From positions 4,588,001-4,652,000 of the forward strand of contig OZ281499.1 in the NCBI GenBank assembly GCA_965637545.1: a DNA stretch of 64,000 nt. Reading direction: 5' to 3'. Of this stretch, positions 6,201 through 45,706 are shown in pieces. The position numbers and the translations under genes were made by a program. The notes beneath the pieces were generated by a model. It was given only the letters and a program-made list of their open reading frames with translations. It did not search any database and had not been told where the DNA came from. Numbering within the stretch: position 1 is the stretch's first letter; the number at the start of each line of letters is the position of its first letter. This DNA is from Phallusia mammillata. Taxonomy: Eukaryota.

Positions 6201-6568
6201 AACCAGTTCTACTTAAAGTGCTATGCCTTGCCTAATAGGCAAACAATAAAATCACAGCAAGTTTTCGTACAATATGACTGACCAAAATGTTTTTACCAAG
6301 TAACTCTATGTCTTAAAGAGGAAGACCAAAATAAAAGGGCAAACACGTGACAGGATTGATGGTCACATTTGCAGAGCTCTTCTGGCAATTGTATTTTTGT
6401 ACCAAAGAGTTTTAATAGTCTTTTGTAAATATATTGCTATATGTTTTACAGTGTGCAAGTGGAGAGTTAAAGACAATGGACTGTGCATATGGTGCTGTGT
6501 TTGATCCTACGTACAATGTCTGTGTTCACCCGTCGTTGGTACCAGACTGTGCAGATGCTATCCGATAG
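248..6568 (+). CDS. CLCA: CLCA family secreted zinc metalloprotease (CLCA_N-vWA-beta-FnIII) with C-terminal chitin-binding type-2 domain, copy 1; multi-exon, 5' exons lie upstream of the window
   Basis: GT-AG exons join in frame: 248-398, 755-869 (HEWAHLRWGIFDE, HExxH at 769-783), 928-1108, 1257-1508 (MIDAS AFDISSSM), 1967-2188, 2441-2551 (ILTDG), 2615-2794, 3193-3420, 3512-3676, 3737-3839, 3944-4023 (DGVYSRYF), 4089-4191, 4322-4430, 4523-4665 (FTAPGDD), 4778-4961, 6004-6178, 6452-6568 (TAG). These motifs are CLCA hallmarks. Confidence 0.93.
5266..5975. mobile_element. hAT-type MITE in a CLCA copy-1 intron
   Basis: TIRs CAGGGGTTCCCAACC / GGTTGGGAACCCCGG; perfect 8-bp TSD ATGTAAAC (5258-5265, 5976-5983); internal CGTACC repeats; the paralogous intron of copy 2 (about 12270-12310) shows the empty site. 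Confidence 0.9.
6104..6568 (+). other. Chitin-binding type-2 (peritrophin-A/CBM14) domain, encoded by the last two coding exons of CLCA copy 1
   Basis: CTDDAGNPASSYPFEKNGDCLRYFQ|CASGELKTMDCAYGAVFDPTYNVCVHPSLVPDC: spacing C-x18-C-x5-C-x9-C-x12-C-x8-C with the typical YP, YF and FDP aromatics. Confidence 0.88.
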
Positions 6569-11730: not shown

Positions 11731-11804
<74 letters not shown>

Positions 11805-21989: not shown

Positions 21990-24900
21990 ATGTATCGGGC
22001 AATCTTGTTTGCCGTCGTTTTCAACTGTTTAACTCAAATGGGAACGACTCAGGTGATTTTAGGTAAGTGTTTCTTACGTGGCTATAACCAAGTTATATAA
22101 AATTGGCAAACCTTTATTCACTTTGTTGCAGAAGGAAGAATTCAGTTCTCGACTTACTATTCAGGCTCATCATACAGAGTCAATTTTGGATCAACATTTC
22201 CGTCTCCACCAACCGTACATGCCTGGGCAAGAGGCTCTTGTCAAAACAAGTAAAAATATTTATATTGGTCGTTGTAAGAATACAAACAGCGTCAAAAGAA
22301 CGTTTTTTTACCTGACCTATTTTTGTTCAGTGTAGGTCCACACCTGAAACGAGATGTTGCGCAGTATTCTTTACTCCTGCGCACAATGTACAAATAAAAA
22401 ACATTGTCAGACATGGTTCTTTAAACACATTTAAACTGTTATACTCGCTGGTTAATTCCAGTAAAATGTATAATTGCTAAGTAGAAGTTTGTGTGTTTTT
22501 CCAAAGAGATTTCGAAATAATTTAACGATTATCATAAAAAAGTGATAAATAAAAAAGCGATATCAGCGATTGGTAAAAGCTTAGGAATTGGCACTTAACT
22601 CATAATACAAAAGATTGTTTTATCTCTTTACCCAGTTACGGAGTCAGCGTTTCGGGTGTTGATGAAAGCGGGTTCACGGCTTATTTGAGCTATTTTTCCG
22701 AAACCATTTATCTTTCCTGGTCGGCAGTTGAAGTTCCACAAGGTTTGCCAAAATTTGCTGCTGTTGTTTGCTTCTTTGTTGGGTTCCTTTTGAACAATTT
22801 ACTTAAACGGAATAATAAAGATCGTTCCAAAGAAAAAAAGTCAATATTTAAATAAGGCCGCGATATAATTAACTACTCTAGTTATAGAGGAGTATTTACT
22901 GTGAGTGTAATTACTCGTATTAAATATATCATAAATTAGACACGAAATCGTTTCGATTATAGACAAACTTACTTACCTGGGAGAAGACACGGTGTCGTAT
23001 ACGTTCAACATTCCGACACCCAACAACATTTCTGTTCCAACTATTACCGAACAAAGCTCCTTTGTTGACGTAATGGGAAGAGAAATTCATTTCTCCCGGC
23101 TCAATCAACTTCTCCACGAGAAAAGGTGAGTTTTGATAAATCTTATTGATAACTTATTGCATTTTGTTAACTTGTCATAAAATGCCGTATTATCTTTCAA
23201 TGATGTTGTATTAGGTTTATTGCATAAGATACCTTTTTTAACGATTTCCTTTCAAAACAAGAGTTCAAAAGATTTTTATTCCTCTTTATGTACTAAGTTA
23301 CATAAATAGACCAAACCACACAAACATCAATTAAAATTGAGACTTTTATCAACTTAAGAGGTCATATTCCTAGAGCTTAAGTGTCCATATACAAACCACA
23401 TGTAAAAATAAGTAAGTTCTTCCCCTCCTTTTGAAATTACTCCCTTTGGAGGAATTCCTTCCCGGTTGGGAACCAGTGCATTAAATGACTTTGCTTAAGT
23501 AAACATCGCGCTTTTATACATTAATATTTGCAGAATTGATCAAATTGCGGCCTCTGCTCAATCAACACTAACGAGAGAACTTTTAATCCGTGGCGACACA
23601 GTTTACGTGGATGACGCCCAGAAAATCCTGAAGGGCTGGAAAAAAGTGACTGTTCTCGCTAGACGTTTGATTTCGAATGGCGGGGTTGTAAACATAAAGG
23701 TAAACGCTTCTACTTTATAACTATTTATCGGAAAACCTTCTCGGTCAAATTTAAAGCCGTTTGTTTTATTTTTTACATATTGGTAATAAAAAGTAGCATT
23801 GCTCCTGTTTAAAAAAACGGTCAACATAAATGTGGTTTGGGAAAAGAAAATGTTCTATTTAAAATAGAAATATTTTAACTTCGTAATCTACTACTTAAAG
23901 AAAAGTTTCTGAGCAGAAAATAAAAAATATTTTTAAATTGTATTACTTCTGGGTTCAGACGCCATATCGGTGCCAGTCATTGTCAAGCTCAGGAACATCA
24001 TGTGGCAGTACTGGGTTCGCATCTATTAACAATATTGGTGCGAATGGCATGGAGGGCTTTCCAAGTCCTGATTTTCATGTCTACGTAGGTGAAATTGACG
24101 GAAACGTAGCCATGAGAAATGAGGTAAAACAACAACCCACAACTGCTCTATTTATTTAAGTTGATTTAGGATCAAACTTCGTTTTATAGCGATACAACTT
24201 TGGGTGCCTAAAAATTATTCAATTTAAAGTTGTCGTTTCTTACAAATAAAAAACAATGCACGTTCTCATTCATGGGAAAAAAGGAATCAATTTAAATGGG
24301 GTAAGAGAAAAATCTTCGATTGGATTTTTCTTGCTTTTCCAGGCCAATCAAGGAAGTGCATCACAAGGTGGCGGGCAAGGGGCAAAAGGAGCCAAAGGAG
24401 CTAAGGGACCATCAATGAATTGTGGTCAATCGTGTGACAGAGATTGTGGCGGTTGGATAACACCCGGAGACACTCATCACAATAAAGGTTGTTTAATTGG
24501 TTGTATTCTAAGATCTTAAAGCTAATTGCCGATGCTACTACATTTTTTTAAAGTTAAATTACATATTGTTCTTTAAAAGACGTGCAGCCTTTAAAATTTA
24601 AACCAAATTAAATAAAGACGTATAGCTAGGCAAATATGTTAATACTTTTCGTACTTTCTGATTTTTATCAGTCAATTTGTTATCCAACCAAAATCTTTTA
24701 GACTAGGTTAAAAAATATTAATCAAACCAACTCAAGATTTTTAGTAATTCGCCTATTTTGAAATTTGATATGTTACCTTAATCTTTTAGCCAGGGGCGGA
24801 TCATTGTTTTGCTTGATAACCCAAACATACGCCAGCGCTTTCTTTTTTTCAAAACGTTAATGAAAGACAAGCACTTCAACTACGGTCTGTTCTAGGCCAA

Positions 24901-27900
24901 CCCGGTGGAAAAGGCGGAACCGGTGGTCCTGGAAGGGAGAGCGGGGTTCCTGGAAAGGGTGGAAGGGTGAGCGATGTGATTGTGTACGCGACAAGTTTGT
25001 CAGGTTATTTGACTCTGTATCAAAAACCTGGCCAAACTGGAGATCCAGCTCCTAATGGATTGGCCGGAGTTGGAGGGTGAGAAACTTTTAGAAAAAACAT
25101 TCGTGTCACGTTTGACGCAAATCCATGATTTTAAGTGGGAGCAATTTTATTTCTGTTCAGACATCCTCCATTTAAACTGTTCTGAAATAGTTATAGTATT
25201 GCTATCTTCTTGTCCTAATGCCTCTGTACAATTGTATTTTAAAACAACGATCATAAATACCGTTTGTCGCTATATATCACATGTGGCCAATGCACCCATT
25301 GAGCGGTCAATCGCATCTAAATTTACACCCAAGTGTATAAGTTTTCGGGTCGGGTTTGATTGGGCCAGGTTCAAGATCATGAGTAAATAAAACGGGTTTG
25401 ATTTGGGCCTGACAACATACTTCAACTTAGATGTTTTTGTATTCTGGTTAAACCAAGTTGTAATAATACAGAGATGGTGGCGATGGCGGATGCTCATGCG
25501 AATGTAACAAGTTTACCTTCTGGTGCAAGGTTTTAGGAGAAGATTGTCATCGTGCTTTAGGAGATCCTGGTCCAAGAGGAAATTGTGGCGAAGATGGATT
25601 TGAAGCAAACAACCCAGTATTGGTTAGTTCAGCAGATTATAATCTCAAATAAGTGGTATAATCTCAAATAAAAAAATATCTTATTGTGACAAAGTTGTAC
25701 CGGATGTGGTTTTAGGTTTTATAAAGCCAAAGCGTTGAAAGAAACACATTAACTTTCTAAACAATAGTGTCATATCAAACCATGAATAATAAATAGGATT
25801 AGGAAATATTGACTTACTCAAGAAAAAGGTATAACGTATAAGTAGAAAGTTGCTCATACACAAATTTTTAATCACCAATACAAACATTTGCACACTGAAA
25901 ATATACAGGGTGGTTATAGTTTAGATCTAGTTAGTTAAGAAGGTCTAAAATTGCGTTATTTGAAGCATGAGGGGGCGAAGTATTGTTAAAAAGTTACTGC
26001 AAATCTTTTGACTTGTTTTTCTCTTTAGATACGTGCACTTTTCTTTTACAGAGCACTTGGGGAGGTGTTGGAAACGCTGACTTGCAAACTATTGAAAGCG
26101 TGAAGCCGTGGTTTGAAAATGACATGGAACTGCTTAACCTGATTCGTCGTAACGGGGAGATGCTCTTCCAGCGAAACGACAACGATGGAGCCAAAGCAGT
26201 TTTTGAGTTTATTCTATCGGTCACTGATGAAAGCTCGGTTATGTATAACGAGGTACGGTATTGTGTTTTGGTTATGATAATGAAAAAATATTAAAAAAAA
26301 AACATTTTATCTATAGCAACATAGTCATTAAGTTTTAAAAATGAAACCTGCCAATGTTAAAAATTCAACACATATTTGTTCTGCATTAGGTTGCCCAACT
26401 TTTAGATTACATCGAAGAGGGATTTGATTTCTATGGCAACACGGAATATTACGCCCCTGATAGAGATTGGACATACTTACAACAAGTTGTTGATGAGCAA
26501 CTTGTAGTTGGTACAGCAATGGAAGACGCGTTTAACGCTGTCTTAGCGAACGTTCGTAGTTTTTGATTTGTTTGCTTTCAAGCCGTATTTATTTCTTTTT
26601 ATAACAACAGATGAACGATATTGCGAGTACATGTATTCAAGTGCAGTCTGTGGTCAATCTTGTTGCCGACACGCGATTGGATCAGCTGTCCTTTGAAGAA
26701 TATGAGCTCACAAGCAAAAAAGAACTTTACCAGGAAGCGTTGGCTTTACTAGAGCAAACAATGGCCGAAGAAATGTCTGAAATTGAAAGGTTGATGATTG
26801 TTGTTGCGGAAGACTTACAAGATGTAAATTGTGATTTTACTTTACTGTGTTACAACCAGTTATTGAACTACAAACACTTGTTACAGGCGCAACAAAAAGG
26901 TTTTTTGGATTATCTTGGAGGAATAACCGCCTGTGCTGTTGGACTCGTGACGCAGGATTACAAAAAAGCTTTAGGAGGAGGCATGGAGGTATGTTCTAAA
27001 AAAAACACAGGAATTAAAGTGTATGATGTTTTGCCTCTTCATTGTTTTTGCGCTCCATAACGTTTTAACGTTGCGCAGCTATGTGTCGCTATGTTCACCA
27101 AGCGAAATAAACTCATCTCATCCCTCTCTCAATTTGTTGTAAAAAAAATTTTGCTTGACCTTTTTTTAGATTGTTTCAGTGCTAAAATCAAAACCTAGCT
27201 GTCCAGCACCCTCAGTGGAAGCGGTGGAAGCCTCAATGGAGGAAAAGTAGGATATTGTGTAACTATTGTACAAATATTTAGTCATTGAAAATTATAACTG
27301 ATAGGTTATTAGCAAACCCTAAAACTTACTACTATTTTGTGGGGATAAAAAATGTAGAAAGGCAAAAGAGTATTTCAACTGATCAGTATCTGACCCTTCA
27401 ACAGGCAGCATGGTTATCGACAATCACCGTGTATGTGATTAAATAAATAAGAATCGAGCGTATTTTCCTAGTAACAAAATCTGACGATGAATATCTTGGA
27501 ATATATATATTTCGCACAATAGCATCTTTAGTTTCTATAAAAACCACAAGTTTTGTGTTCACAAAATATTTGTCTCCAATTCTATTGAGTATTTGCCTTG
27601 ATTTGTTATGTTTGCTATTTCAGCTTGCAATTTGCGTTTGAGTACGAAGCACTGGATCCTGAAGATTTGGACTTTAGTGCAATGGACGCATCAGCTGTTC
27701 CCATCATAATGATGAGCAACTTGCTAAAAGACAGATCTCAACTACTACAAGATTTGCGTTGTCTCTTTACTAGTTCGGAAAATGTAAATACATTGACCCA
27801 CTCAATCTGTGGTGATGCTTGAAAACATTATGTTTTGTTAGGCACTCACTCTGGAAAGACTAATAGACGATTACTTTCGAGACGGTGCGTTCCGTATCAA

Positions 27901-30900
27901 GTTGATTGACATGTTGATTAACATGGATGCCCAACTAAAGGTAATTTATTCTTGGACAATTTAAAAACTTTTTTAAAGCAAGTGTTTTTACCTACCTCAC
28001 TAAAGCTGTAGACTCTGAACGGCCGACCTGCAAGGCTGAGCCTCACAAAGGGGTTTGTCACGTTGAAACACGCCCCGCCCTTTCCCACACAAATCACACT
28101 TCCCGAATCTCGTGTAATAATCCACAGCGGCAACAACCACAACGTCGTGCACAATCAGGAACGGACAGAAACAGGGTTGAGAACGAAACGGGAACGGTTT
28201 TCTAAACAAGAAAACGAAACACATTGACATATGTCAACGCACAAAAATGCCAATGACTAACTTACCAACTATTTTGTGACACAGGTCAACAGGTACAGTA
28301 CACGTATCAACAGTTGCAAGACGATGAAACAATCGCTGCAATCACTATAGGAAAATACAGCATGTCATAAGTCACACATAAAGCCATGAATTAATTTAGG
28401 TCACAAATCGAATTAAACACTCACCGACAATCACGGTAAACAGCCTTCACTTGAAGATTAATTAGTCAGTCGTCAAAATATTTAATTTAGCCTTATTCGT
28501 CTCTAAAAATGAAACACAAACGAATTTACTTAATGCAGTAATAAAGTCACCTCACTCGACCACGTTGTACGGTAAAATGAACCAATCATTGCAACATGCA
28601 GACAAAGTCCTTCCAATTTTACTGTTACGCACATGGCGATTGTAACGTCATAGCAGGGGAACAGTGAGACAAGTTAATCATGCGTAACTGAACTTGGAGA
28701 TGTAACAAAAGCACTAAACAGTATTTTGTACACAATTTTGTTTTTTGCAGCAAATCGGATACAACAAACAACTGATGGAGGAGGCAAAAGCCAAAGTAGA
28801 TGAGGCCGTTCAGGAGACCTTAAATGGTATTTCCATGACGGGAATGTCTACTTTCACCGACACATTGCTTAAGTCAGTTGTATGAGCGTTTGGCCAGTTT
28901 TGGTTAAAATTTCACGAGCAAGTTCTATAGACATTTTCGCAAATCGTAGCAAACAATGAGAAGTACGCAAAAATAAAACATGTTTATGCTGAAACAATTT
29001 ACTAAAGGTTTCGGTTTAAAGGAAGTGTCCAATATATCAAAATTCATTCTAAAATCCCATAAAAGTCATTATATTGTCTTTATATTTATTATGAATTTGA
29101 TACCGGTAACGTAGTAGGTTTAGGTTTTGGTAAAAGGTGACCGTTTTCGTAGCCTAACTCTTGACCTGTTTGAAATTTTGGTTAAATTTCCGGATGATAT
29201 CGTATGGCAAAAACACTTGAATCACTGTCCATAAGCAGTGCTGGATTAAGGGTCTGCTGGCCTGTAGGCACATTTTATAAGTGGCCCGAAAATCAGGGTT
29301 GCCTGCTAAAAAATTATAATTATCAGTGTTGCCAAATCATTGTCACAAAGTCTACTGATTTTAAAGTGGCCTGGATTTTTGACTGGCCTGTAGGCACGTG
29401 CCTACTTTGCCTAATGGTTAATCCGGCACTGTCCATAAGTCGAGATTTACTACAAATGGTCAAAATTCGATAACGCAGAGTTAAGAAATACAAATCGATT
29501 TTCTATTTTTTTCCTGTATCGTTTGATTTAATGCATATTTTAGCAAGGTGTTTCGGGGTGTAATGTTTTTTTTCATCCAATACTTTTCAGTTTGTACCAG
29601 CACCAAGAAAACGCTATCATGGAATCAATTTACGAACTATCGAAAGCTTATCAATTCGAAAGTCTCATGGAATATGATGTTCTTGGCAAATACAACTCTG
29701 CCATCAGCGACCAGGCAAATCTAAGCTCTATGACTTTCCCATATGCTATTATAACATTTCACATTTATAGGGGACTGTTGACAATCTTGGTGCTTTGGTC
29801 GGAATGGTTCAACTTCAGTTGATATATCAAGACCTGGAAACTCAAAGAGACAACTTCTTGGACCTGACTGCATCCTTGGCTGGACCTACATCGCATGTAT
29901 TTACTGCCTATTGGGAATATAACACAGTAAGTCTTGTGAAGTAAACAGAAGCACTTTTTGATTTAGCACTGTAGCGAATATGTGAATTTCTATTCTTTAA
30001 ATTTGCTCAACAATTTCACAGCAAAATCACCCAGAACTTATCAATCAACTGAAGCAGACTGGACAAACCATGATTGACATGCTTGTGGATCCGCTTGATC
30101 CTCGCACGACCGGATGTGAGAGGTGTTACAACGGCCGCTTGGTGGGGCTGTATGTAGAAGTTGACGGATCCCCACAATCCCGATCTGTGCCAACCTAGTA
30201 AGCGCTTATTTCCTGATATCCAAACTTTTACTTTGATACTTATACACAGACTTATAATGGGGCTTGGTCGAAAATAAAAGTAGCTTGGTACCTAATACTT
30301 TTGCGTTTTAATCCGTAAATCCGTAGCAATTGTTGAGACGTCTTTATAATATATATAAGCTCTCATTCAGTTTGATTTTGAGAAACTATTTTGTTATTCG
30401 TGCATTTTATCTGCTGTAACTCGTACCTTGTATGTTTTCATAGCACTTACGTGGTTGTGGCTCACGAAGGGGACTCAAACTTTCTGCAACCCACGGCTGA
30501 CGATGGTACAACTAATGTTGAACTCCAGCAAACTCCCGAAGACATCGATGGTGGCAGAGTTATGACATTTGACTCGGCCAGTTTCGTATCTTCCATCCTC
30601 GACGACAATTTGGCTGATAAGTTTAATGAAGATGTACTGCTTGTTGTATACTTTTTAAAGGAAAACGGTAATTACTGTTGGTGTTGTTTAGGAATACACG
30701 TTTTGCGAATATGACGCAGGCAACTTCTTTGGCTCAAAGCCATGTAAGAGTCCCTATGCAACTTATGTGATAAAAGTTCCGCGAACGGATAGCTATGAAT
30801 GTACGTTGGATCCGAACTACTTCATCTCGGGAACAAACTGCAAGGACTTCGACTTTTCAAAGTATTTTTTGTCAAAAGTACTTACGTATTTTGAATTTAA

Positions 30901-31441
30901 TTCAAACTTATTTTGTTACAGATTAAGTACTATTCGGATTTATGCGAAAATTCAGTCATGGAGTGATTATCCTGTCGATGTTCAAGATGTAAACAGGTAC
31001 ATCTCATAGTTTGTGTAACTTTCGGAAGAGCTTTGCTAAAAAATTAAATATATCCCTGCTAAAAACGTTATCAAGGTCAAATCTGTTTGCAATGTTGTGA
31101 CCCTATAAAACAGTGGTCGGCAACCACTGGTCCATGTGGGGTTTTGTTACCGGGCCGCATAAAACTTGCTCTAGGTTCAGATTAAATCACAGTTGTAATA
31201 ACTGTAATTAGTTTTCAGTGCTGAACATTTGTGATTTTTAAAGGCCGGCCCGTGATAAAAATTTCAGTTTCAAACCGGTCCGTAGTGCAAAAAAATGTTG
31301 CCGACGCCTGCTGCAAAATACTGCTTTAAGGAATTTTAGATTACTTGCCAAGCGTTTAAATACTTGTATTTATGATTTAAACACAGAAGGCTACTTCGAC
31401 TTAAAATGATGGAAGACAACTCCCAAAGCAGCATGGAATAA
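21990..31441 (+). CDS. Secreted lectin-headed, Gly-rich, Tc-toxin(TcA)-like protein, paralogue A (about 20 exons)
   Basis: Signal exon MYRAILFAVVFNCLTQMGTTQ; lectin-like exons 22132-22249 and 22636-22742; LLIRGDTVYVD..VTVLARRL; GAKGAKGAKG and GGKGGTGGPG repeats; GFDFYGNTEYYAP; hydrophobic exon 26887-26988; LINQLKQTG..YNGRLVGLYVEV..SPYATYVIKVP..DFSKLSTIRIYAK; last exon 31387-31441. Exon structure is supported by paralogues B and C; function is inferred. Confidence 0.85.
29236..29431. mobile_element. hAT-type MITE
   Basis: TIRs CAGTGCTGGATTAA / TTAATCCGGCACTG; perfect 8-bp TSD TCCATAAG. Confidence 0.88.
31111..31310. mobile_element. hAT-type MITE in the last intron of paralogue A
   Basis: TIRs CAGTGGTCGGCAAC / GTTGCCGACGCCTG; TSD CTATAAAA / CTGCAAAA (6 of 8 match); absent from the paralogous intron of B. 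Confidence 0.75.
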
Positions 31442-33048
31442 TCGTCAACGTACGGAAGAAATCTGCTAAAATGTTTCAAACTAATTCGTGCAACACGTGT
31501 GTGTGTCATAACAGAAAATAAAATAAACTGGTGTCGGAAAAAACTATTTGTCCGAATAAACAGTATTTTGATTAGGATGTAAGTTACGACCATACGATCA
31601 CAACCGCCTGGCTCACATGTACTGCTGGGTACTGTAAAATGCCAAAAAACACATTGTTTGACATTTGGCTTTAAAAATGATCTAAAATTAATATTTTGGG
31701 CGAAAAAGCTAATGAATTTACACATATTGTAAATAGGTGCGGTAATCCAGTTGTTACATTTTTCATTAAGCTCAGCGGATACCCTGTTGGCTATGTTTGA
31801 AATAAAAAACTGTGCTGCTAACACCGATATTATATGATTTCGGATATGATACTTAATTGCATTTCTGTTCAAATTGATTTTTAAATGCTTTCGTGCTCCA
31901 TCGATGCCAATATCAAAATAATAGAAGGCTAGAATACATAGAAAAAATGTGCTATATTTGTGTATTTGTTATCACACAATATCTTTGGGCAGGGGTCACC
32001 AAACTACGGCCTGTGGGTCGGCTCTGACCCTTGAGGTCATTTTATCCGGCCGATATTTTTGGTTTGCCAAATCGTATTGATAATTTTGTAATATTCAAAA
32101 ATTAATCTACCCCCACAAAAGTTTTTCTGCATTGACGTGTAGAATTAATTTTACCTAGTTTCAAAGGATTATAACGCCCAGGAATAATTCAAAGCTGGTT
32201 TGTTACATCACATACAGGACTACAAGTATTAATTGTGCGTAATCAATTGCCTTCTTTTGTTACTTGTGGCGTAATATAGGAGCATTGCTCGAAAGATTAG
32301 ACTAACTATAATCGTATGGGCTATCGAGTCAAATATCCTGTACGGTTTTAGGGCTTGCAAACTGTGCGGCCCCTTCGAATCATTATTTAAACTTATCCGT
32401 CCCGCTGCCAAAAATTTGGTTAACCCTGACTTAGGTTAACAATCGATAAATGAAATCGAGTTACATTAGTTGAGTATGACGTTGAAGTTTTGTACGTGAC
32501 AGAAACTGGTGACGTGACTCGAAGACAATCAAAAAGTTATATTTACCCAGCCTGTCGGTTTTCAAAACTATCAAACGTTTAGTTGTACAAAGTGACAACC
32601 GTGTACATTACAAACAGCGTATATCCCTTTTCCCATCATGCCACACCTCCTCTGGAATCATTACTGGAATCATCTATTGCAACTTTATCAAGATGTGTTT
32701 GTTCTTTCTCGCAGCTCACGTTTATTACACGAATTTTATCTCACTTCCATAACCGCTGATAAGAGGATGAACTTTGATGTTGGTGCTAACTGTTTACTCT
32801 CACAAAGCCTAAATTGCACGTGTATCAATTCACACGGTTATATACATCATGCATTGACTGGTGACGTAGAGAGGTATACGTGACTTTTGCCATTGGCGCT
32901 TGATCAAAACGAACTAGGTAAATTTAACACTTTCGTTGCAGATGTTGTCTTCCCATGAAAACCATTCGTTCTCGCTATAAATGCGTAGCAATTAAAAAAG
33001 TGCATCCATTTGTACATTGAGAATTAGCAAGACTTTGAAAGAAGTAAA

Positions 33049-36000
33049 ATGAAAACATCCGTGATCTTTCATGCATTTGCTGCCATTGTCAGTTGTTTTG
33101 TTCAACTAGGATACACTCAGATGTCTTTGGGCAAGTGTTATTATTCGGCTATCACAAAGTAATGTGAAACTAGAAAACCTTTTTTCACACTGTTTCAGAA
33201 GGCAAAGTTGAGTTGTCAGCCTCCTATTCGGGCTTACCTTACAGAGTCAGTTTTGGATCAACATTTCCATTACCACCAGACGTAGACGCCTGGGCACGAG
33301 GCTCTTGTCAAAATGGGTAGCGAATTATTTTGTTTTTGTTGGTAATTTCATGGAAGACCGGGGATTATTCGGACACGATACCCCGGAAAAGCATTAGAAT
33401 ATTGTAATATCATAATTACAATCTACTTTACCTCTAATACAGGGGTGTCCAACACGTGGCACGCGTGCCAAATATGGCACGCAGAGCATTTGAATATGGC
33501 ACTCAAGCTTTTGCCAGTATTCAAATGGTAAACTTTATGATTTCTCACCCAACCAACTTTTGTCTATTTTCTGAGTTTCCCAAAAAAGTTTACTTGCATT
33601 TGACATAAGATTTTTCCTCGGCGATTCCATCTAAGGTTCTATATATATTGGCCGAATATTGGGAATTGGCGCGAATCGGCAATAAGTTAGCAAGATTAGA
33701 CAAGCTTTTGTTTCGTCTTGGAAAACGGGAAAGGTTATCAATGGTAGCCTTAGCGTGAACAGCTGGGCTACAATTTGTAATGAAGATTTGAATGCGCAGG
33801 GAAGCGCCTAATATTTGCGCGGTAAAATATCCCGTGTTTACAAAAATACCCAACGTTGTCATGCGAATATATTTAAAAACCAAAATTTGCACGGCAGTGT
33901 TTTCCAGTTGGACAACAAATTTATTTAACTTTTGGACTCACCTCCTCTAAAATAATTTCGCAAGTGTAGTGCATTGTTTGCGAGCACAAACGCTTTTAAA
34001 AAGAAACGAATATTATGATGCAATACCTTATGGCGTAACACAAATTATGAATAATGACATACGTGGCAAAGTTTTTAGTTTGTTTTAGTTTGCAATTTTT
34101 TTAACTGCGGGCCGGATCATTTTAATAATCACGCTCGAGAGTCGCATCGGTTACAAGCCCTGACGCAGCCTTTCCCAAACGGTAGAGCTACTAACACTGT
34201 GCTTCACCTTTGGCTCGACCTGGGAACTTCTGGTAGATGGCGCAAAAGAGCATAGGCGTTTATGGTGCTGTTACAGCAATTTGGGTTTATGGTAAGAATA
34301 ATTGCTGAGTCAGCACCATAAACGCCTATGCTCTTTTGCGACACCTACCAGAAGTTCCCAGGTCGAGCCAAAGGTAAAGCTCAGTGTTAGTAACTCTACC
34401 TTCCCAAACTGGCACACGCGAGGCGATTTTGACGAGACCGCGAAGGGTTCATGTCTTCCCACGATCTTATTTGTATTCAGATTGTGCCGCTGTTTAGTTG
34501 TAAAATTGTGAAAATTATATAAGTGTCACATACCAACTAATGCACGTTTATTCTACCACAAGGAACTAAAAAAGCAATTGTTCGCACACAATTACTATTC
34601 TTTGCTTTTATATGTGACGTAACAACTGCTTTTGGATGATGCTTATGCCTGGTTATCCTGTTAGACGAGGTAAAATTATTACTAAAATGTATTATATGAA
34701 TGTTTACACAATTGCTAACGCCCCGGATCCGTAATTAAGTGATCCCTGGTTTACACCATAGGCAACGGAAACTTTTGGTAGTTTCATTGCTGCATGTGTT
34801 CGAAAAAACTGTCGTTTTTTGCCTGTTTTGGGGGGGCGTGAAGTGCCCGACAAACACCTTAGGGGGGGCGTGGACAAAAAAGGTTAAGAACCGCTGACTT
34901 AAAGAGTCAATTTAATGATACAAATTATAAATTATTAGCTCCACTTTAATTGCCATGTAAAACCTTTAAGCGTTAAGCAATCAGTTGGCCGTATTGCTTA
35001 TATTTATTTGCAACAAGCTATATACGAATATAACCAAAATGTTACCTTGGTTATTGGTAAAAAAAAAACTGAAGCGATTAAGTAAGAATAAAAATACAAC
35101 AAATCTTCCAACTTTTTTCGATATCTACCAACTCTTTTTGACAGTTACCCTGTCAGTGTTTCGGAAGTTGATGAAAACGGATTTACAATTGTAGTACACA
35201 ACTTCCTTGAGACGATTACGGTTTCTTGGTCAGCTACTGAAGTACAAGGTTGGTAAAGTGTAACTGTTAATTTTGCTAATTTTAACATTTTAATTGACAA
35301 ATTGGACGTTATAAAGACAAATAACAACAGAAATTTTCTTTGGACGTCCGAATCGGCGATAAATTAGACGAACAAGTAGTCGCCATACGTTCATTAAAGT
35401 ATGTTGTTGTTCTTGTTCTAGAAAAAATTACTTACCTCGGCGAAGGCAATGTAACCTACACATTCAATATTCCTCCACCCAACAACATTTCCGTTCCAAC
35501 TATTACCGAACAAAACTCCATTGTTGACGTAATGGGAAGAGAAATTCATTTCTCCCGACTCAATCAACTGCTTCACGAGAAAGGGTTTCTGTCCTTAAGA
35601 ATTTTAGTTTAAAACTGATAGTGTTACAATGTTTGCCTAAAACCATTTTCGCCGAAAAAACGGCTGTATCTCTTCAAATTAATTTCACTCATTAAAGAGT
35701 GTTGTTACAAACCTAACATTCTTTAGAATTGAACAAATTGCCGCATCGACTCAGTCGGAAATAACAAGGGAACTTATTATCCGTGCGGATACCGTGTACG
35801 TAGATGACACTGAGAAAGTCTTAAAGGGCTGGAAAAATGTGACCTTTCTTGCAAGACGTTTAGTTTCCAATAGTGGTGTCCTAAATTTGCAGGTAAACGC
35901 CTAATACTAGTGTCGACCGCAAAAGAGAGCTAAACTATCTGGTTCCTAAACTATCTGGAAAATTACATTTTGTTCTGTCTCAGTTGCATAAAAGTAAATT

Positions 36001-39000
36001 TAAACAAGTTGGTTTTTAAATGCGTCCTGGTAACATAAATCGGTAAAAGCAAGACCAAAAAAATTGGCGGGGTCAAACAAAAGTATTTTTAATGCAAAAT
36101 AAATACTTTTCACACACTAGACGCCGTACCGGTGCCAATCGTTGTCAAGTTCGGGAACAACTTGCGCGGGATTTTCAGTTGCAGACATTGACAAAACTGG
36201 TGCAAATGGCACGGATGGCTATTCGAGTCCTGTTTTTCATGTCTATGTCGGCGAATTAGACGGAAACATAGTTATGGTGAACGAGGTAACCCAACAACCG
36301 CCAACTAATAGGATTTATTTTTGCCGATAATAACGGCCACTTATACCATTTTTAACAGTAATTTTTGCGTGAGGCAAACATACGGGTCCAAAATTAAATT
36401 TGCAGGAGCATAAGTTACCTCAAATAGCTTAAATAATTTGGCACAATGTATCATCACATATCTAACCCAAAAACAAAAAAAGAAGAACGAAAGGATGTTT
36501 TAACGTTTCTAAAATTACCTTCTTTTTTAATGTAAACATTAGCACCTAATGTGAACTAGATATCCCACCTTAACAACAACAAAAGGAAGCAGATTTTCGT
36601 AATTGGTGTTGTAAAACATGCTTACGTTTCAGGCAAGTCAAGGAAGCACATCACAAGCTGGCGGGCAAGGAGAGAAAGGAGTTAAAGGAGCCAAGGGTCC
36701 AACAATGGATTGCAATGTGGAGTGTGGAAATAATTGTGTTGTGACGTTGGAATATTATTACGTCAAAGGTTCATTCCTGTTTTTCAGTTAATAATTACGT
36801 CGCTTTTATGTAGCTCCTCAAAAAAACTTTATTGTGAGTTACCTAAATCAATAAGTCAGACAAATTACATTAATTACGACACCCAGCAAATCTTTGTAAA
36901 CCTATTAACATAACGTAAGTAAAATTTCCTTCAATGTACGTGTTTGATAAGTTATTATAAACTTAACTGCTAAGACTTATTCTTAACTGCTAAAATTGAT
37001 TAAATTACTAAATTAAAGATACTGCCAGTTCGATTAAGCCCGAAAATGTGGATGAAATTACAAGCTGCCAGAACCATAACTACATACCTTGTTTGCACCC
37101 TACAACGTTTTCTAAATGTGTACACTGCTCTAGGCCGGCGCGGTGAAAAAGGCGGAACCGGTGAACCTGGAAGGTCGAGCGGGGTTCCCGGAAAGGGTGG
37201 AAGCGCAAGTGATGTTGTGGTATACGCGACAAGTTTATCAGGTTATTTGACTCTGTATCAAAAACCTGGCCAAGGTGGAGGTCCATCTCCTAATGGATTT
37301 GGCGGAGATGGAGGGTGAGAAACTTGTAAAAAACGAAATATTGTGTCTGAGTGTTATTCTCATTTTCAAATGTAGCAGCCTATTTCTAACCACAAATTGA
37401 GTTTCACCTAATTAACGATTTTTTAAGCACATCGACTTAAACAGTTCAAGCAATTTATGTTAAACACCCTCTTGCTGCATTTTTTATGTTTTTTTCAACT
37501 ATTGCTGTCAAAACCGCTTTGTCATGATGCAGAGATGGTGGGGATGGAGGTTGTTCATGTTTATGCTTATCCTACTTTTATTGCTATGCTGTTGATCAGG
37601 ATTGCACTTCACACTTAGGAGATCAAGGACAAACGGGAGATTGTGGAAGCGATGGTTTTGACGTCTGCAGCCCAAACGTGGTGAGTTGTCAATAAAGTAA
37701 AGAAACCGACTAGACAAATTTTATGCAATTACGAAGCATTAGGCAAGTTTTGCGTCAGTTATATCTATTTGTACATTGAGAAGTTAGAGCGTGAAAAACC
37801 AATTAACGTTAAGACCCAATTCTGCTAGTAGAGTAGCTTTTACTTACATCATGTTTTCACAGAACACTGCTGGAACTGTTGGAAACGCTGACTTGCAAAC
37901 TATTGAAAGCGTGAAGCCGTGGTTTGAAAATGACATGGAACTGCTTAGTCTGGTTCGTCGCAACGGGGAGATGCTCTTCCAGCGAAACGACAACGATGGA
38001 GCTAAAGCAGTTTTCGAGTTTATTCTGTCGGTCACTGATGAAAGTTCTGTTATGTACAGTGAGGTACAATAAATTAAATCTAAACATAAATTCGGAAATC
38101 GATTTACCTGGTGTTGGTTTGGTTGGAATAATTTTTATTTTTGCTGCAACAGGTTGCCGAGCTTTTAAGATACATCGAAGAGGGATTTTACTTCTATGGC
38201 CACACCGAATATTACGTCCCAGACCAAGACTGGAGATTCTTAAAAGAAATAGTTGAAGAGCAACTTGACGTTGGGACACAGCTTGAAAATACACTTAACC
38301 TGGTTCTTGCAAACGTAAATTTGTCCTCTTAAATGTTTTTTTTTAATTTTGCAAATTCATATTTAGGCAAATAGGTGATGAAATAGTTTCGGTTACATCA
38401 CAGAAATAGAGAGAATTATTTACATTGAAGCAACGCTATAAACTTTTAGATAAATGATATTAAGGAAACATGTCTTCAAGTGCAGCCTGTTGTCAAACTT
38501 GTCGCCATAGCACGACTAAAGGAATTGTCCTGTGAAGAAACTGAACTGAACAGGAAAAAGAAGCTTTATCAGAAAGCATTGGTTCTGATTGAACAAACTC
38601 TGGATGAACAAATGATTGAAATTAAACAGCGACTACCTGCCGTTTTAGCAGACTTGCAGCAAGTAAGTTATGCTTTAGGGCAGGGGTGTCAAACTCGTGG
38701 GGGTTCGAGGGCCACATTGCAGTTTGGAAAATATGCCAAGGGCCGCATATGATTTTTAATTTATTTTCATACACTCAAATTTAACGCTTATTTTTAGTCA
38801 AACATAGGAGTTTTTATTTATAAATTCAACTTCTGCAAACGTATCTTTAAATCATAGCTTTCACTTTGAAAGGTTAGAATATTTTATTATTTTAAAAAAA
38901 TCTTGCAAAACACTACAATTGTTGTTAAGTGTTTAAACGCCATTAGAGGGTAGAGAGTTGACATCCCTGTGCTAGGGTATATACTTGGCCTTTTTTATAT

Positions 39001-42000
39001 TTTGTTATTCAAAGGCGCAACAAACTGATTTTTTGGATTATTTTGGAGGAATAACTGCTTGTGCAGTTGGTCTTGGAACGAAACGTTACAAAATCGCCTT
39101 AACAGGAGCAATGCAGGTGGGTGCTTACAATTACGTCATGAGCATTCCTAAAAGCATATCTTAAACCTAAATGCTTTGGGGGTTTGTCCATGGTTTTTCA
39201 ATATACTGATTAAAGCTATTTAGATTGGTTTGACAATGAAATCAATGCCTAGCTGTCCAGCAACTTCAGTGGACGATACCATGTCATCAATGGAGAAAAG
39301 GTGTGACACCGTTGAAATATTTGTGCGCAAAAAATTCCGTTAAAATTATTGCAGGATTTTTGTTTGTTATAAAACTTAGTTTGGACCTTTGTAAGAATTT
39401 CATCTTTTCAACTTTGGACCGTGTCGTTACATTTTTTCAGTAAACTAAGCGTTTCCATTTCGCTTGCAATAATAAAATTAGATGTTTGAGTATATTAACT
39501 TACATGTCATCATTTTGAATTACCACATTTTCCTCTTTAGCTTAAAGTTTGCGTTTGAATACGAGAAATTAGATCCTAAAGATTTGGACTTCAGTGCAAT
39601 GGATGCATCGGCTGTTCCTATATTAATGATGAGTGATTTGCTGAAGGACAGATCTCAGCTTTTGCAAGATTTGCAATGTCTTTTCAACGACACCACTTCA
39701 GAAAACGTAAGTGCACATGCATTATATTTTCAAACAAGTTTCAAAAACATGGAATCTAATACGTCATAGGCTCGCAGTCTAGAAAGACTGATGAACGAAT
39801 ATTTTCTGGATGGCTCGTTTCGAATCAAGCTAATTGACACATTGATTACCATTGACGTTCAACTTAAGGTAAGTTGCAATTGGGTGCTCTGTGGATTGTG
39901 GACATATTATGAAACTAAAAAACTAAGTTAAACTGATTTCAAACGGGACTTATGAAACTTCACGAATTGCGCCAGAGCATTTGCTAATGCATATTTTCTT
40001 GAATTGCAGCAAATCATGTACAACAGACAGCTGTTAGTGGATATTGATGCCGAAGTTAGAGAGGCCGTCGAAAAGACCATAAACAATGCTTCCGTGCAGG
40101 GAATGTCAACCTACACTGACATGTTGCTAAAGTGAGTGTCTAAAGTATTTTCTAAGTTTTCTTTTTGTTTCACATGTAACACAAATATGGCGGGAAGGTA
40201 AAATCAAGTCATCATTATCCAATGTGACAACTTTTGTCTAAATAAAAAACACGTTAATGTTATTGAATTTATGAGTTATGTTTTTCATTTATTTTTTTAA
40301 TCCATATGCAATTAAACGGATTGCACTTTTGCTGTTGCTATTATTTTACAGTTTGTACCAACAACAAGAAAACGCCATCATGAAATCAATTTACGAATTA
40401 TCAAAAGCTTATCAATATGAAAGTCTCATAGATTATGATGCGGTTGATAAATATAACTTCCTCTTCAGCGACCAGGTATCCTTAAAACTTTTGATTTTCC
40501 ACAATCTAACTTAATAATTTACTAAGTTTAAAGAGCTCTTCTGGCAAATGTAATTTTATTCTAACGTTTCGACGTCCTCTTTTTTCTTTTGTTTATCGTG
40601 CACTGTACTAGTCGCATTCAGTGTTATTTACCCTGATGAAGACGACCTGTACAGGACATCGAAACGTCGGAATAAAACTACATTTGCCAGAAGAGCTCTT
40701 AAAACTTGATACTATGCCTGGCAGCAATAGCTTATGTATTAATAATTTACTGTTTAACTCAGGCGACGGTTGACATGTACGGGGCCTTGGTTGGAATAAC
40801 TCGACTATCCTGGATATTTCAAGACCTAATAGATCAGCGGAATTACTTCTTGGAAGTCACAGTACCTTCTAACGCTCCTAAGTCACATATTTTTACTGCA
40901 TACTGGGAATTTACCGCAGTAACAACTTTCCACTGAGGTGTAGCAACAAGTTTTACTCAGGTTAAGCTTTAACAAGATTTGTGATTTCGCAGCAAAACCA
41001 CCCAGAAGTAATCAGCGACTTAAAGCAAACTGGACAAACCATGCTTAATGTGAATGTGGATCCACTTGATCCCCGCACAACTGGTTGTGAGAGGTGTTAC
41101 AACGGCCGCTTGGTGGGGTTGTATGTTGAAGTTGACGGAGATCCACAACCCAAATCTGTGCCACCCTAGTAAGCGCTTATTCCCTGACAAACAAATGTTT
41201 ACGAAAAAAGTCTCATACACAAACGTAGCTTGGTCGAAAACTAAACTCCGTGGTATCTATATTCACTATGTCGTTCCTATAGATTCAATATAAACTCTCT
41301 ATCAGTTTGGTTTTAAGTCGACTGCACTGTTATTTGTGCATTTTATCTGCCGTAATTAGTACCTTGTATGTTTTTATAGCACTTACCTGGTTTTGGCTCA
41401 CGAAGGGGATTCAAACGTTTTGCAACCCACGGCTGACGATGGCACAACTATTGTTGAACTCCAACAAACTCCCGAAGATATCGATGGTGGCAGAATAATA
41501 ACCTTTGACTCCGCCAATTTTGTATCTTCGATCCTCGACGAGAATTTGGCTGATAAGTTTAATGAAGATGTACTGCTTGTTGTATACTTTTTAAAGGAAA
41601 ACGGTAATTACTGTTGGTGTTGTTTAGGAATACACGTTTTGCGAATATGACGCAGGCAACTTCTTTGGCTCTAAGCCGTGCAAGAGTCCATATGCAACTT
41701 ATGTGATAAAAGTACCACGAACGGATAGCTATGAATGTACGTTGGATCCAAACTACTTCATCTCGGGAACAAACTGCAAGGACTTCGACTTTTCAAAGTA
41801 ATTTTTGTCCAAAGTACATGTATATTAAGTTTAATTCAAACTTTCTTGTTACAGGTTGGACACTGTTCGGATTTATGCGAAAATTCAGTCGTGGAGTGAT
41901 TATCCTGTTGATGTTCAAGATGTAAACAGGTACACATAATAGTTTGTGTAACTTTCTGAATAGCCTTGCAAAAAAGTATATATAAACCTGCTTATAAACG

Positions 42001-42160
42001 TTATCAACGCCAAATCTGTTTGCAATCTTTTAACTGTATAAAAACTAAGGGAAATTAAGATTTCTTACCAAGCGTGTGTTTATACGAGTACTTGTGATTT
42101 ATACACAGGCGTCTGCTACGACTTAAAATGATGGAAGACAACTCACATAACATGAAATAG
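33049..42160 (+). CDS. Secreted lectin-headed, Gly-rich, Tc-toxin(TcA)-like protein, paralogue B
   Basis: ATG 33049 (MKTSVIFHAFAAIVSCFVQLGYTQ), TATAAA near 32976, GC donor at 33131, lectin-like exons 33199-33316 and 35145-35248, exon-for-exon match to paralogue A, last exon 42109-42160 (RRLLRLKMMEDNSHNMK*). Confidence 0.85.
34181..34400. mobile_element. MULE(Mutator)-type foldback MITE
   Basis: Inverted arms of about 100 bp beginning GGTAGAGCTACTAACAC; perfect 9-bp TSD TTCCCAAAC (34172-34180, 34401-34409). Confidence 0.85.
38681..38969. mobile_element. hAT-type MITE
   Basis: TIRs CAGGGGTGTCAAACTC / GAGTTGACATCCCTG; partial TSD (CTTTAGGG / TGCTAGGG). Confidence 0.75.
40524..40706. repeat. 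Palindromic element with a hammerhead-ribozyme-like core, intronic in paralogue B
   Basis: Arms AAGAGCTCTTCTGGCAAATGTA..ACGTTTCGACGTCCT / AGGACATCGAAACGT..TACATTTGCCAGAAGAGCTCTT; CTGATGA at 40633-40639, GAAACGTC at 40661-40668. Confidence 0.75.
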
Positions 42161-42599
42161 TCGTCAACGTACTGAAGAAACCTGCTTTTAAACTAATTCG
42201 TTTGACTTGTGTGTGTAAATCGAATCATAACATGAAATAAATTGGTGTCGGAAAATAATATGTTTGCACGAATAAACAGCATTTGAAGTTTAACCTACTG
42301 ATTACGATGACACAAAGCAAAATTTTCCACATATAGTGATTGTTGATAGTAGTGTATAGATAAGTAACAAATTAAACTTCTCAAACCACACTCTACTGCA
42401 AAAATATGTAAATAGCATGAAAACAAGAATATAGAGTGAGGTAAAGCGAAAGTTCGAAAAATGATGCTAGTAGTTAAAGTGTCAAGCCGATATAGGACTA
42501 TGGAGCTTACCTGCAAACATAACCACATTGGCTGAGTGAGAAGCCTACGAAAAATCGAATCACAAACACCGTCGCCTACCCAGTATCCTGCATTTTCAT

Positions 42600-42890: not shown

Positions 42891-45706
42891 GGTCAACTGT
42901 TCAAAACAATCGTAGAAACATACTATTCTTTTCAAATGTTAATAAATTAATACTTAATTGCTGTTAAATTACGAACATAATATCATGTGTAGTCTGGCAA
43001 ACCAGTCTCCTCCAAAAAACATTTAAGTTATCAACATAACCCAGTACCTTCAGGGTAATTGCCACGGTTTTTGTTTACTCTAACATTTTGCCTGGTATGT
43101 TTGCATTTTGCTTAAAATAATCGTTGTGCTGCTGAAAGTCAACAGTCATTGCGACTGTAAACGAAGTGCATAGCAAACAGCTGCATTACTGCATGAGTAA
43201 TGCAAGTTGCTGTCGTTGTAAAGGAAAGTATAGAACTGTTTTACGAACCTTACGTAGAGTACTAAAGTTTTTAAACTTTGATGTATGGCAATGACAGCTA
43301 AAAGTAAAACTCTGGGCAGACAAATGCGGTGTTAAAAAAGGTCACGATCATTCTTAGATTAGGGTGATGTGTGACCGTACGACTACATGTACTGGCGACC
43401 ATGCAATGCTAAAAACGTCTTTTTTAGACATTTGGTTTCGAAATTGGTTCAAATAATATATTTTGGCCGAGAAAGATACTGTACTTTGATTGTTCAGCCT
43501 AATGTAAGTAGGTGTGCTAATTCAGCTGCTAGACGTTTTGTTGAAGGTAACAGATTTTTGTCCGAGAAAGATACTGAATTTCAATTGTCCAGCCTATTGT
43601 AAATAGGTGTGCTAGTCCAATTACTAGACTTTTTATTTAAGCTCAGTGTATATGTTGTGGGCTGTAATTGAAATTAAAACATGTGCTGCTACTAGCAATA
43701 ACGGTAGACTAATACGCACCTGGATTAGATTAGCATAAACCGAAGATATAAGCCGAGATTATTTGTTTTCTAACATGATTGCATTTCCGTCACAAATCGA
43801 TTTTTGAAATGTTGTGTTCCATCGCTGCCATTTCCAAAATAATAACAGCTAAGAATACATAAATCTGATTTAAAGTGGGATTATATCTGAAGCCTGCACA
43901 GTCTAAAGAGATGCGAGATCGTGACCATATCGATTATTTGTGTTATTACAACATTGACCGATACGACGCCAAATGAAATTCGGTCGGGATTATTTCATGC
44001 TTAAATGTTAGCACAGAGACGAATTTGAACAGTTACCTAGGGCTGTGAGGACATTTCGTGGCAGTTCCGAAAGCAGGTGAATGTTTAAAAATTGGAAGAC
44101 AGTTAAGGTTTAAAATCATGTCAGTATATAAAAGTCATTTGACATTATGATAACCTCTTAAATCAGATGTATATTTTGCGATAGAGATTACATATTATTC
44201 AAATAGAATACGATTTTCAAAATAACCTTTAAGTTTTTTACGCTTTTTATTGGGTTTACAAGCCAACTAAGCACAGTCAAATGTTACACGTTTACCTAAT
44301 TGACGATTATACACGACTATAATAACAAACAGTAAAAGGCAAAACCTATGTAAATATTTTTTTGGCAGTTTAAGAGTATTATTCTGTTTTATGATTAAAT
44401 TATTTGTAAAGTATGTTTAATCAACAACGGTTTGACAATCCACGTGTACGTCGATCAATGTCACTCTGTATCACGCCGCAATTATATTACGATCCACTAC
44501 ATTTAAGGATGCTCGACCCCATACGAAAAGATCAGGGGCACTTGTAGCTTTACTGCAACACAATCAACAACGAAATTTTCCCCTTTTTTCTTCGAGTGCT
44601 CTTCATATAGCCTGGGCGGCTGACAACCCTATTTGCCTCGCGTTAAGCTGTTGGTGATGTTGGTAAGGAGATGAATGAAACAGGATAGCACTGAAAAGGC
44701 ATTTAAAACTAGTGTATTTTGGTTTGTTAGGAAAGCATTCAGGTATTTTATTGTTTTTGGAATACATAATATAAATAGGTAACAGAGTCAACGTGGCGAG
44801 CTTTGTTACAAACGTGTAATGTTAAGTTATACAAACAGGGAATTAAGTAGCTTGTTTGTTTCTTTCATTTAATTTGACGTAACTTGCCTTTTTTAGATAA
44901 TTTGATGTTTGGTTTGCAACATACATCAACAAAAGGCAATGTTTTCAAAATAACGATCACGTATATTATACCTGTACTGATTAGGATGTTCGATATTAAC
45001 TGCTGTGTTTTAAATAGAAACGCAATCGTTTCACAGCAATCAGAAACAGACAAAAAAAAAGCCTGATACAAACATTAAGTGTTTTTCAAATGTACCTTAC
45101 AGACAGTGGTGAAAATTGAATCTGATTTAGTGGACCGTTTGCAAACGTTTGAAATATATGTTTGTTTCCAAATTTAAACATTTCTAGTGGTGGCGACAGT
45201 GAAGTGTTACGTTAGTGTATTAATTGTTTAGTGCTGAGCAATGTTGTTTGCTGGAAAGAGAAAGTACCGAACAATAAACAAATTCTCACATGATTTCTTC
45301 TTACAAGTTTAACTGATATATATTGAAATATTTGAAAGGACAAAGTTGTCATCAAGTTGAAAACTTACAACCTTTCCTTTTTTAATTTATCCAAATCATG
45401 TTTATTTCAAATTGAAACGTTTGACTACAATCAGTGCTGGTGACTGTTAATGGTTAACCACTGGTGACTGTTAACGTTATCACGTTAGTGTTTTAGCCGT
45501 TTAATGCTGTCTTCCTATGTAAAGTTTTCATTCACCGACGACGGCTATGCAATAGAAAGTATAAACTGTGAAACAAAAGTTTTTTAATGCCAGTTTAATT
45601 TGTACCTTTTAAACATTAAACATTTACGGAAGCAAATTGAACATTTTAATTCTTTTTTGTTTGTTACTCCAAATATTTAGCTGATAATAGAATACATTGA
45701 CTTGGC

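Follow-up and report, generated by a model that had tools for sequence, protein, structure and literature searches.

The A subunit of the Tc toxins (TcA) is a well-studied membrane-injection machine. In YenA2, shell helices are followed by a linker, an extended pair of pore helices and a beta-sandwich TcB-binding domain (PMC6486591). Glycan- or receptor-binding modules are carried on the same TcA chain (PMC11435725, PMC6486591), and TcA alone, without TcB-TcC, forms conducting pores (PMC6795518). Tc-derived proteins are also known from eukaryotes. The teneurins (PMC6425310) and mosquito SGS1 (PMC9935623) are TcB/TcC-like YD shells, while a fungal Tc toxin of Metarhizium comprises a canonical, full-size TcA with InterPro-recognised domains (PMC13236867). 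In the literature that we searched, reports of TcA relatives are confined to bacteria and, as a very recent addition, to fungi, which have the canonical form; no paper deals with animal TcA-like proteins or with the tunicate family described here. This family is encoded in a stretch of 64,000 nucleotides from Phallusia mammillata (GenBank assembly GCA_965637545.1, contig OZ281499.1, positions 4,588,001 to 4,652,000 of the forward strand), which we call the window. It contains tandem genes for putatively secreted proteins of about 1100 amino acids (aa), in which an H-type lectin domain is joined to a large module whose predicted fold resembles TcA.

Two intact paralogous genes, A and B, lie on the plus strand of the window, each with 23 exons, 22 introns and about 1100 codons. 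Comparison of the window with itself gave two colinear sets of conserved blocks on this strand and a third, partial set, copy C, on the minus strand near the window end. We built the exon models from the nucleotide block alignments of A and B with their flanks, reading off the splice sites, and fixed the 3' ends of exons 21 and 22 with copy C and with relatives from other organisms. The window is free of N runs. In both genes the reading phase is unbroken from ATG to stop, and the only uncertain boundary is the 3' end of exon 7 (about 24487). The introns are of the GT-AG type except for one GC donor per copy, namely at 29715-29770 (A intron 18) and at 33131-33198 (B intron 1), where the counterpart in the other paralogue is GT. 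Intron sizes range from 56 to 810 nt in A, and B intron 2 measures 1828 nt. The best exon match between A and B has an E value of 1e-64, the amino-acid identity per exon is 38-100%, and the pooled dN/dS, calculated from exon-wise codon alignments, is 0.27; A and B are under purifying selection. Additionally, full-length proteins of Ciona and Clavelina are tiled colinearly by all window exons at 40-60% identity, which validates the exon models and assigns the window to a tunicate. The exon matches, the dN/dS value and this tiling together show that the common exon structure of A and B is not a product of chance. The alignment behind the tiling contains the window exons as fragment rows with some scattered residues and served for this purpose only. 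In all other searches the window sequence was used exon by exon, and full-length natural relatives stood in as proxies where whole proteins had to be searched or folded.

A first-pass annotation, made from the letters of this DNA, had described a family of three intron-containing, secreted, lectin-headed, Tc-toxin-like paralogues between 21990 and 42160. Two complete copies are indeed found there; the third amounts to four exons outside this interval, on the minus strand at 63077-61270. The estimate of about 20 introns comes close to the 22 that we count per gene, and with its tandem paralogues the family is intron-rich and expanded in a tunicate, in keeping with the invertebrate chordate that had been proposed. 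Both plus-strand copies, A and B, contain all sequence features that had been listed. In A, a hydrophobic, signal-like N-terminus is encoded by exon 1, and the beta module with RVNFGSTFPSPPTVHAW, VSGVDESGFT and LSWSA by exons 2 and 3. The L.I.(A/G)DT..V..LARRL segment is present in exon 5 as LLIRGDTVYVDD...VLARRL, followed by an interrupted Gly-rich and Cys-rich stretch in exons 7-9. Exon 11 contains the helical-region motif GFDFYGN..YAP as GFDFYGNTEYYAP, and exon 13 the Gly/Ala-rich hydrophobic segment FLDYLGGITACAVGLVT. Further helices belong to exons 14-19 and a Cys-containing tail to exons 20-23. The coordinates are collected in Table 1. Overall, the observations of the first-pass annotation are confirmed, while its interpretation is partly supported.

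Table 1. Features of the 64,000-nucleotide window with their positions, strands and supporting observations.
Feature	Position	Strand	Observation
Paralogue A, complete	21990..31009	+	23 exons, about 1102 codons and stop; consistent phases
A exon 1: ATG and signal-like, hydrophobic N-terminus	21990..22062	+	Translation; second most hydrophobic stretch of the family alignment
A exons 2-3: H-type lectin domain, split by an intron	22132-22249, 22636-22742	+	Pfam H_lectin halves
A exons 4-6: beta-rich, RGDTVYVDD...ARRL segment	22963..24123	+	Common to bacterial P0051 (hhalign 98%)
A exons 7-9: interrupted Gly-rich stretch, conserved Cys	24343..25622	+	Also in bacterial homologues; irregular compared with collagen triplets
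A exons 10-12: first helical block, TPR-like stretch and GFDFYGN..YAP motif	26052..26823	+	
A exon 13: Gly/Ala-rich hydrophobic segment, candidate membrane-inserting tip	26887..26988	+	Hydropathy; between long helices in models
A exons 14-19: long-helix region	27170..29926	+	Secondary structure in models of relatives; helices to about 60 residues
A exons 20-23: C-terminal beta-rich domain, three conserved Cys pairs, stop	30022..31009	+	Best-predicted part of model 2 (P0047), pLDDT 80-90
Paralogue B, complete	33049..41939	+	23 exons; exon lengths and phases as in A
Partial paralogue C with counterparts of exons 20-23	63077-62902, 62180-61991, 61603-61434, 61348-61270	-	
NACHT pieces	53144-53569, 53917-54537	+	Pfam E 1.2e-7 (53144-53569)
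LRR repeats of the NACHT-LRR gene	55703-56683, 57082-57570	+	Pfam
CLCA N-terminal matches	1257-1634 (+), 16342-16725 (-)	+ and -	Pfam

At the N-terminus, the Pfam profile H_lectin (PF09458) matches A exon 2 over profile positions 2-20 (E 0.059, 13.9 bits) and B exon 3 over positions 35-67 (E 0.021, 15.4 bits), both below the cut-off of 24 bits. The two matches cover complementary halves of the profile in the correct order, as would be expected of a domain that is split by an intron and whose exons were searched singly. The full-length relative P0004 reaches 32.9 bits with this profile, and nine of the 12 full-length relatives match it at E <= 1. It is the sole family that Pfam recognises in these relatives, and a scan of all A exons and of B exons 2-3 gave nothing besides the weak H_lectin halves. 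In agreement with the beta-sandwich of the Helix pomatia agglutinin, the lectin part of the model of a further relative, P0042, matches 2cgy_A, 4q56_A and 2ccv in Foldseek with TM scores of 0.64-0.66 by target length, a root-mean-square deviation (rmsd) of about 3.4 A and probability 1.0. Taken over the solved H-type lectin folds that were matched (the Helix pomatia and Helix aspersa agglutinins and coral SLL-2), the TM scores by target length are 0.56-0.66. These lectins are small chains of 94-101 residues, whereas in the family described here the domain is the N-terminal part of a chain of about 1100 aa. On the strength of the profile matches and of the modelled fold of a relative we assign an H-type lectin domain to the N-terminus of the window proteins, as had been proposed.

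The remaining, larger part of the protein was approached with AlphaFold2 models of two natural relatives, P0042 and P0047, which share 35% identity with each other and take the place of the window proteins. The P0042 model, calculated from a 12-sequence alignment, is poor (pLDDT 53, pTM 0.30) and was kept as a replicate. The model of P0047, a Clavelina paralogue without the lectin, is based on 18 sequences and better (pLDDT 66, pTM 0.50); 422 of its 877 residues have a pLDDT >= 70. Both models run, from the N- to the C-terminus, through a beta-rich and Gly-rich part and a helical region, with predicted helices of up to 58-62 residues, and close with a beta domain some 200 residues long. When these models were compared with the PDB by Foldseek, the best 21 matches of P0042 (E 7e-8 to 1e-5, 522-806 columns) and the best 22 matches of P0047 (E 2e-10 to 2e-7, 587-806 columns) were all TcA chains, with a probability of 1.0. 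We find among them TcdA1 (in prepore, pore and intermediate states) and TcdA4 from Photorhabdus, XptA1 and XptA2 from Xenorhabdus, Yersinia TcaA-TcaB, and the A-subunit chains of YenTc with YenA2; these are the only strong structural matches of the two predicted family members. The next unrelated match is a chemoreceptor domain for P0042 (2.6e-3) and dynein for P0047 (7.8e-3), with long coiled-coil proteins behind. Additionally, the 179-residue TcdA1 fragment 6l7i_A matches the P0047 model with a TM score of 0.40 by target length and a probability of 0.96.

Several points weigh against a kinship with TcA. Compared with whole TcA chains, the TM scores are only 0.1-0.2, the rmsd exceeds 50 A and the identity is 9-14%. 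The Foldseek output comes without residue ranges, and the TcA domains that are aligned cannot be named. The models themselves are of relatives and have low to medium confidence. No Tc family of Pfam (PF18276, neuraminidase-like, ABC-toxin N-terminal) matches the window exons or the 12 relatives at E <= 1, and no TcA chain appears at E <= 10 in sequence searches of the PDB with the family profile or with P0052 and P0053, two bacterial homologues described below; a PDB sequence search with exon 22 gave nothing related either. The 12 relatives contain no recognisable shell, receptor-binding domain (RBD) or neuraminidase-like domain, and the tunicate protein is less than half as long as a TcA. H-type lectins typically assemble as trimers, TcA as a pentamer. 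Finally, the hydrophobic segment of exon 13 is only moderately hydrophobic. The low global TM score would be expected if the domain arrangement in our monomer models differs from that of the extended pentameric TcA, which is however no proof. The first-pass annotation had based its toxin assignment on a motif of the TcB-binding domain. This motif is not borne out by a PF18276 match, and the likeness to TcA finds no support in sequence profiles; it is supported by the predicted fold of two family members.

With these points in mind one could argue that the likeness to TcA arises artefactually from long-helix models of medium quality and that the module represents a new fold, common to tunicates and some bacteria. 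The modest pLDDT values, low TM scores and large rmsd fit this explanation, every sequence test against Tc families and PDB sequences is negative, and both models derive from shallow, overlapping alignments. Dynein, Rad50 and MukB, however, rank five or more orders of magnitude behind the TcA chains in both searches, and the TcA matches, at 520-806 columns, extend beyond the helices alone. Moreover, the better model yields the better E value (from 7e-8 to 2e-10), and the short fragment of TcdA1 is matched as well. We therefore regard an artefact as rather unlikely. Structural kinship of the tunicate module to TcA is the best available reading and, as far as the models can tell, quite probable.

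How far does this kinship go? Like TcA, the tunicate proteins are predicted to have long helices, with a hydrophobic element inside the helical part, followed by a C-terminal domain of the beta-sandwich type, and a glycan- or receptor-binding module belongs to the same chain. Their predicted order starts with a first group of helices, continues with the hydrophobic segment and further long helices, and finishes with the C-terminal beta domain, of about 200 aa. This arrangement matches that of YenA2, with which the order and sizes in the last 650 residues are compatible. The differences are equally clear. The tunicate chains comprise about 1100 aa, compared with 2285-2540 modelled residues in chains of the TcdA1 and XptA type. 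Their receptor module is the N-terminal H-type lectin, and they have neither a large shell nor immunoglobulin-like RBDs. They are eukaryotic, with 22 introns per gene and disulfide-type Cys. Genes for TcB or TcC (RHS/YD cocoon) were not found within the window, where the long open pieces match CLCA, NACHT and LRR only; the first-pass annotation had likewise seen no such partner. By Pfam and by architecture, these proteins are not members of the TcA family in the strict sense. Because a TcB-binding profile match, the characteristic domains, the length and a B/C partner are all missing, we describe them as a distant, miniaturised and lectin-headed TcA-like variant and not as a Tc toxin.

A possible bacterial ancestry had also been suggested, and here a profile search with the family alignment proved informative, as it led to three prokaryotic proteins. 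P0052 (1074 aa, from a Logan contig) aligns with the family from the Gly-rich region to the C-terminal domain (hhalign 99.3%, E 1.3e-20, 791 columns, 22% identity), and it has a 74%-identical relative in a metagenome-assembled genome (MAG) of the Pyrinomonadaceae. P0053, a hypothetical protein of 1222 aa from Pedobacter soli, aligns over 320 columns that include the motif GFDYYG..Y.P (hhalign 98.8%). P0051 (1105 aa), from a contig with bacterial gene neighbours, shares 199 columns covering the RGD..VY segment and the Gly-rich part (hhalign 98%). The homologues thus resemble the tunicate proteins in length (1074-1222 aa) and in a profile homology that spans the Gly-rich and helical regions and in P0052 reaches the C-terminal domain. 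They differ in having neither an H-type lectin head nor introns, at an identity of about 20-23%. None of the three has a Pfam match or an NCBIfam annotation, and for P0052 and P0053 no related sequence was matched in the PDB; they may represent an unrecognised bacterial protein family. The non-lectin module is thus of bacterial type and of about equal size, which gives the suggested bacterial ancestry substantial support. Their genes, in Pedobacter soli, in a further bacterium and in the Pyrinomonadaceae MAG, stand alone amid unrelated housekeeping and regulatory genes, and no TcB/TcC-like neighbours were seen at the three loci.

Relatives in eukaryotes were sought by phmmer with A exon 10 among 1.84 billion representative proteins. 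The search gave two kinds of matches, namely TPR proteins and single-stretch matches to long proteins. Every long protein that we followed up belongs to the ascidian Clavelina lepadiformis and is labelled "uncharacterized". When one of these served as the query, LOC100176654 of Ciona intestinalis was found in addition, as were two proteins of 1123 aa encoded on JGI contigs of 3.5 kb. The contig that was inspected has no introns and carries an AATAAA signal at its end, which identifies it as a eukaryotic mRNA from a metatranscriptome. Apart from two such eukaryotic metatranscriptome mRNAs, all full-length relatives that were found come from tunicates (Ciona, Clavelina). The TPR proteins were rejected as relatives, for their matches rest on a single TPR-like stretch of 30 residues. 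This stretch, residues 28-57 of A exon 10 (26052-26252), resembles the TPR_12 type and draws multi-repeat bacterial TPR/STAND proteins as top phmmer matches; Pfam calls no TPR in the family proteins. Bacterial contamination was dismissed as well, in view of the 22 introns and the eukaryotic neighbour genes.

With a mean Kyte-Doolittle value of 1.5, the Gly/Ala-rich segment of exon 13 has the highest hydropathy in the family alignment once the signal peptide is set aside, and the equivalent segment sits between long helices in both models. The alignment also has 14 conserved Cys columns, eight of which, apparently paired, lie C-terminal to the segment, and the window copies retain nearly all of them. 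A signal peptide together with a single hydrophobic stretch, conserved over some 19-22 residues in the middle of the protein, could also be expected of a single-pass membrane receptor. The segment would then be a transmembrane helix that leaves the lectin and the Gly-rich part on the outer face of the cell and places the C-terminal half in the cytoplasm. For a transmembrane helix, however, the segment has a low hydropathy and is Gly/Ala-rich, and in some members it includes a charged residue. The conserved, apparently paired Cys behind it suggest an oxidising, extracellular location and favour a chain that is extracellular as a whole, and the bacterial homologues have the same layout. We consequently reject the receptor explanation as very improbable, above all for the Cys pairs in the C-terminal half.

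What could such proteins do? We favour, with moderate confidence, a bacterial-derived, miniaturised TcA-like module with a putative pore function, equipped with a lectin head and expanded in tunicates; the medium quality of the models and the Foldseek output without residue ranges keep us from a firmer statement. The tandem genes would give rise to secreted proteins of about 1100 aa in two parts, a lectin and a module of about 900 aa. The N-terminal H-type lectin would dock the protein on a glycan of the target surface. The module, with its beta/Gly-rich region, its predicted bundle of long helices containing the hydrophobic segment and its disulfide-bearing C-terminal beta domain, would correspond to the pore apparatus of TcA, that is, to a remnant of the helical shell, the channel helices and the terminal beta-sandwich. 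After oligomerisation, which we infer, the long helices and the hydrophobic segment could enter the target membrane and form an alpha-helical pore there, for which a TcB/TcC cargo cocoon would not be needed. Such a glycan-guided pore formation is suggested by the kinship to TcA, the lectin head, the conserved hydrophobic segment and the pores formed by TcA alone (PMC6795518). The likely role would be in immunity or defence, and a NACHT-LRR (NLR-type) gene downstream in the window also speaks for this proposal.

The same architecture could alternatively serve a lectin-bearing structural, agglutinating or matrix protein, in which the C-terminal module is a non-inserting oligomerisation scaffold of TcA-like ancestry and the whole would cross-link glycans, for instance during clotting or in the mucus or tunic. 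Agglutination is the classical activity of H-type lectins, and the Helix pomatia agglutinin is matched by the lectin part; many conserved Cys of the disulfide type, a hydrophobic segment of moderate hydropathy and the lack of a TcB/TcC partner within the window would suit such a role, too. In its composition the Gly-rich region faintly resembles collagen-like adhesins, but a collagen reading had to be rejected, as the Gly-X-Y triplets are short, interrupted and irregular. With NCBIfam, the family and the bacterial homologues gave only collagen-like or spurious matches far below threshold (SclB with 21.5 bits compared with a cut-off of 325), and in the models the region consists of beta strands and loops. 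Furthermore, the Gly/Ala segment and its flanking long helices are kept across paralogues that are only 33-50% identical, and the entire module is conserved down to stand-alone, lectin-free bacterial proteins. We thus think a matrix function unlikely and prefer the TcA-like pore module.

As to its origin, horizontal transfer may have brought a compact TcA-type pore from bacteria into a chordate lineage, where fusion with an H-type lectin and subsequent expansion would have produced glycan-guided, self-sufficient pore-forming immune effectors. We offer this scenario tentatively and rate its chances as somewhat less than even. That the tunicate protein still docks an unlinked YD-shell cargo via its C-terminal domain is very unlikely. 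The teneurins, SGS1 and the fungal Tc toxin are precedents for Tc parts of bacterial origin in eukaryotes. Teneurins and SGS1, however, represent the B/C cocoon and not the A subunit, whereas the tunicate family is A-like, and the fungal TcA keeps the canonical domains and the full size, which the tunicate family does not. If our proposal is correct, the family would be a new class of candidate pore-forming proteins in chordate innate immunity and, after teneurins and SGS1, the second example of animals domesticating parts of Tc toxins, with the A subunit in the place that the B/C cocoon has in the case of teneurins. A minimal natural form of the TcA channel would thereby be defined, alongside a bacterial family that carries no annotation, and an unrecognised "mini-TcA" class in Acidobacteriota, Bacteroidota and other bacteria would be indicated. 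The proposal also offers an annotation hypothesis for genes that are so far listed as "uncharacterized", among them Ciona LOC100176654 and over ten loci of Clavelina.

The 3' ends of A and B are far more alike than the remainder of the genes. The block 30013-31110 of A is 83% identical in nucleotides to 40984-42043 of B, introns included (blastn), and exon 22 is 100% identical at the protein level. Both findings suggest a recent gene conversion at the 3' ends. The duplicated unit reaches several hundred bases beyond the stop codons, with 31330-31568 corresponding to 42050-42284 and 31694-31820 to 43556-43691. In copy C all four exons are open with matching phases, and three of them agree in length with their A counterparts (176, 190 and 170 nt). 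No upstream exons are recognisable between 63077 and the window end; copy C either runs past the window edge or is truncated. Just upstream of its first recognisable exon, in gene orientation, lies a 21-bp tandem repeat (63715-63919, 9.8 copies, 95% match), which reads as a KAESPQQ-type repeat in one frame.

The other genes of the window are of different kinds. The NACHT-LRR gene extends from 51400 to 57600 on the plus strand, downstream of paralogue B, and is a neighbour of the innate-immunity type. Scans of the window for tRNAs and Rfam families were empty. Two CLCA-like copies (calcium-activated chloride channel regulator) are found at 233-6561 on the plus and at 18454-11568 on the minus strand, inverted tail-to-tail, with blocks of 68-94% nucleotide identity. 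A poly(A) run of 69 bases (11731-11799) marks the centre of this inverted duplication, and a 95-bp tandem duplication is located downstream of paralogue B at 43461-43641.

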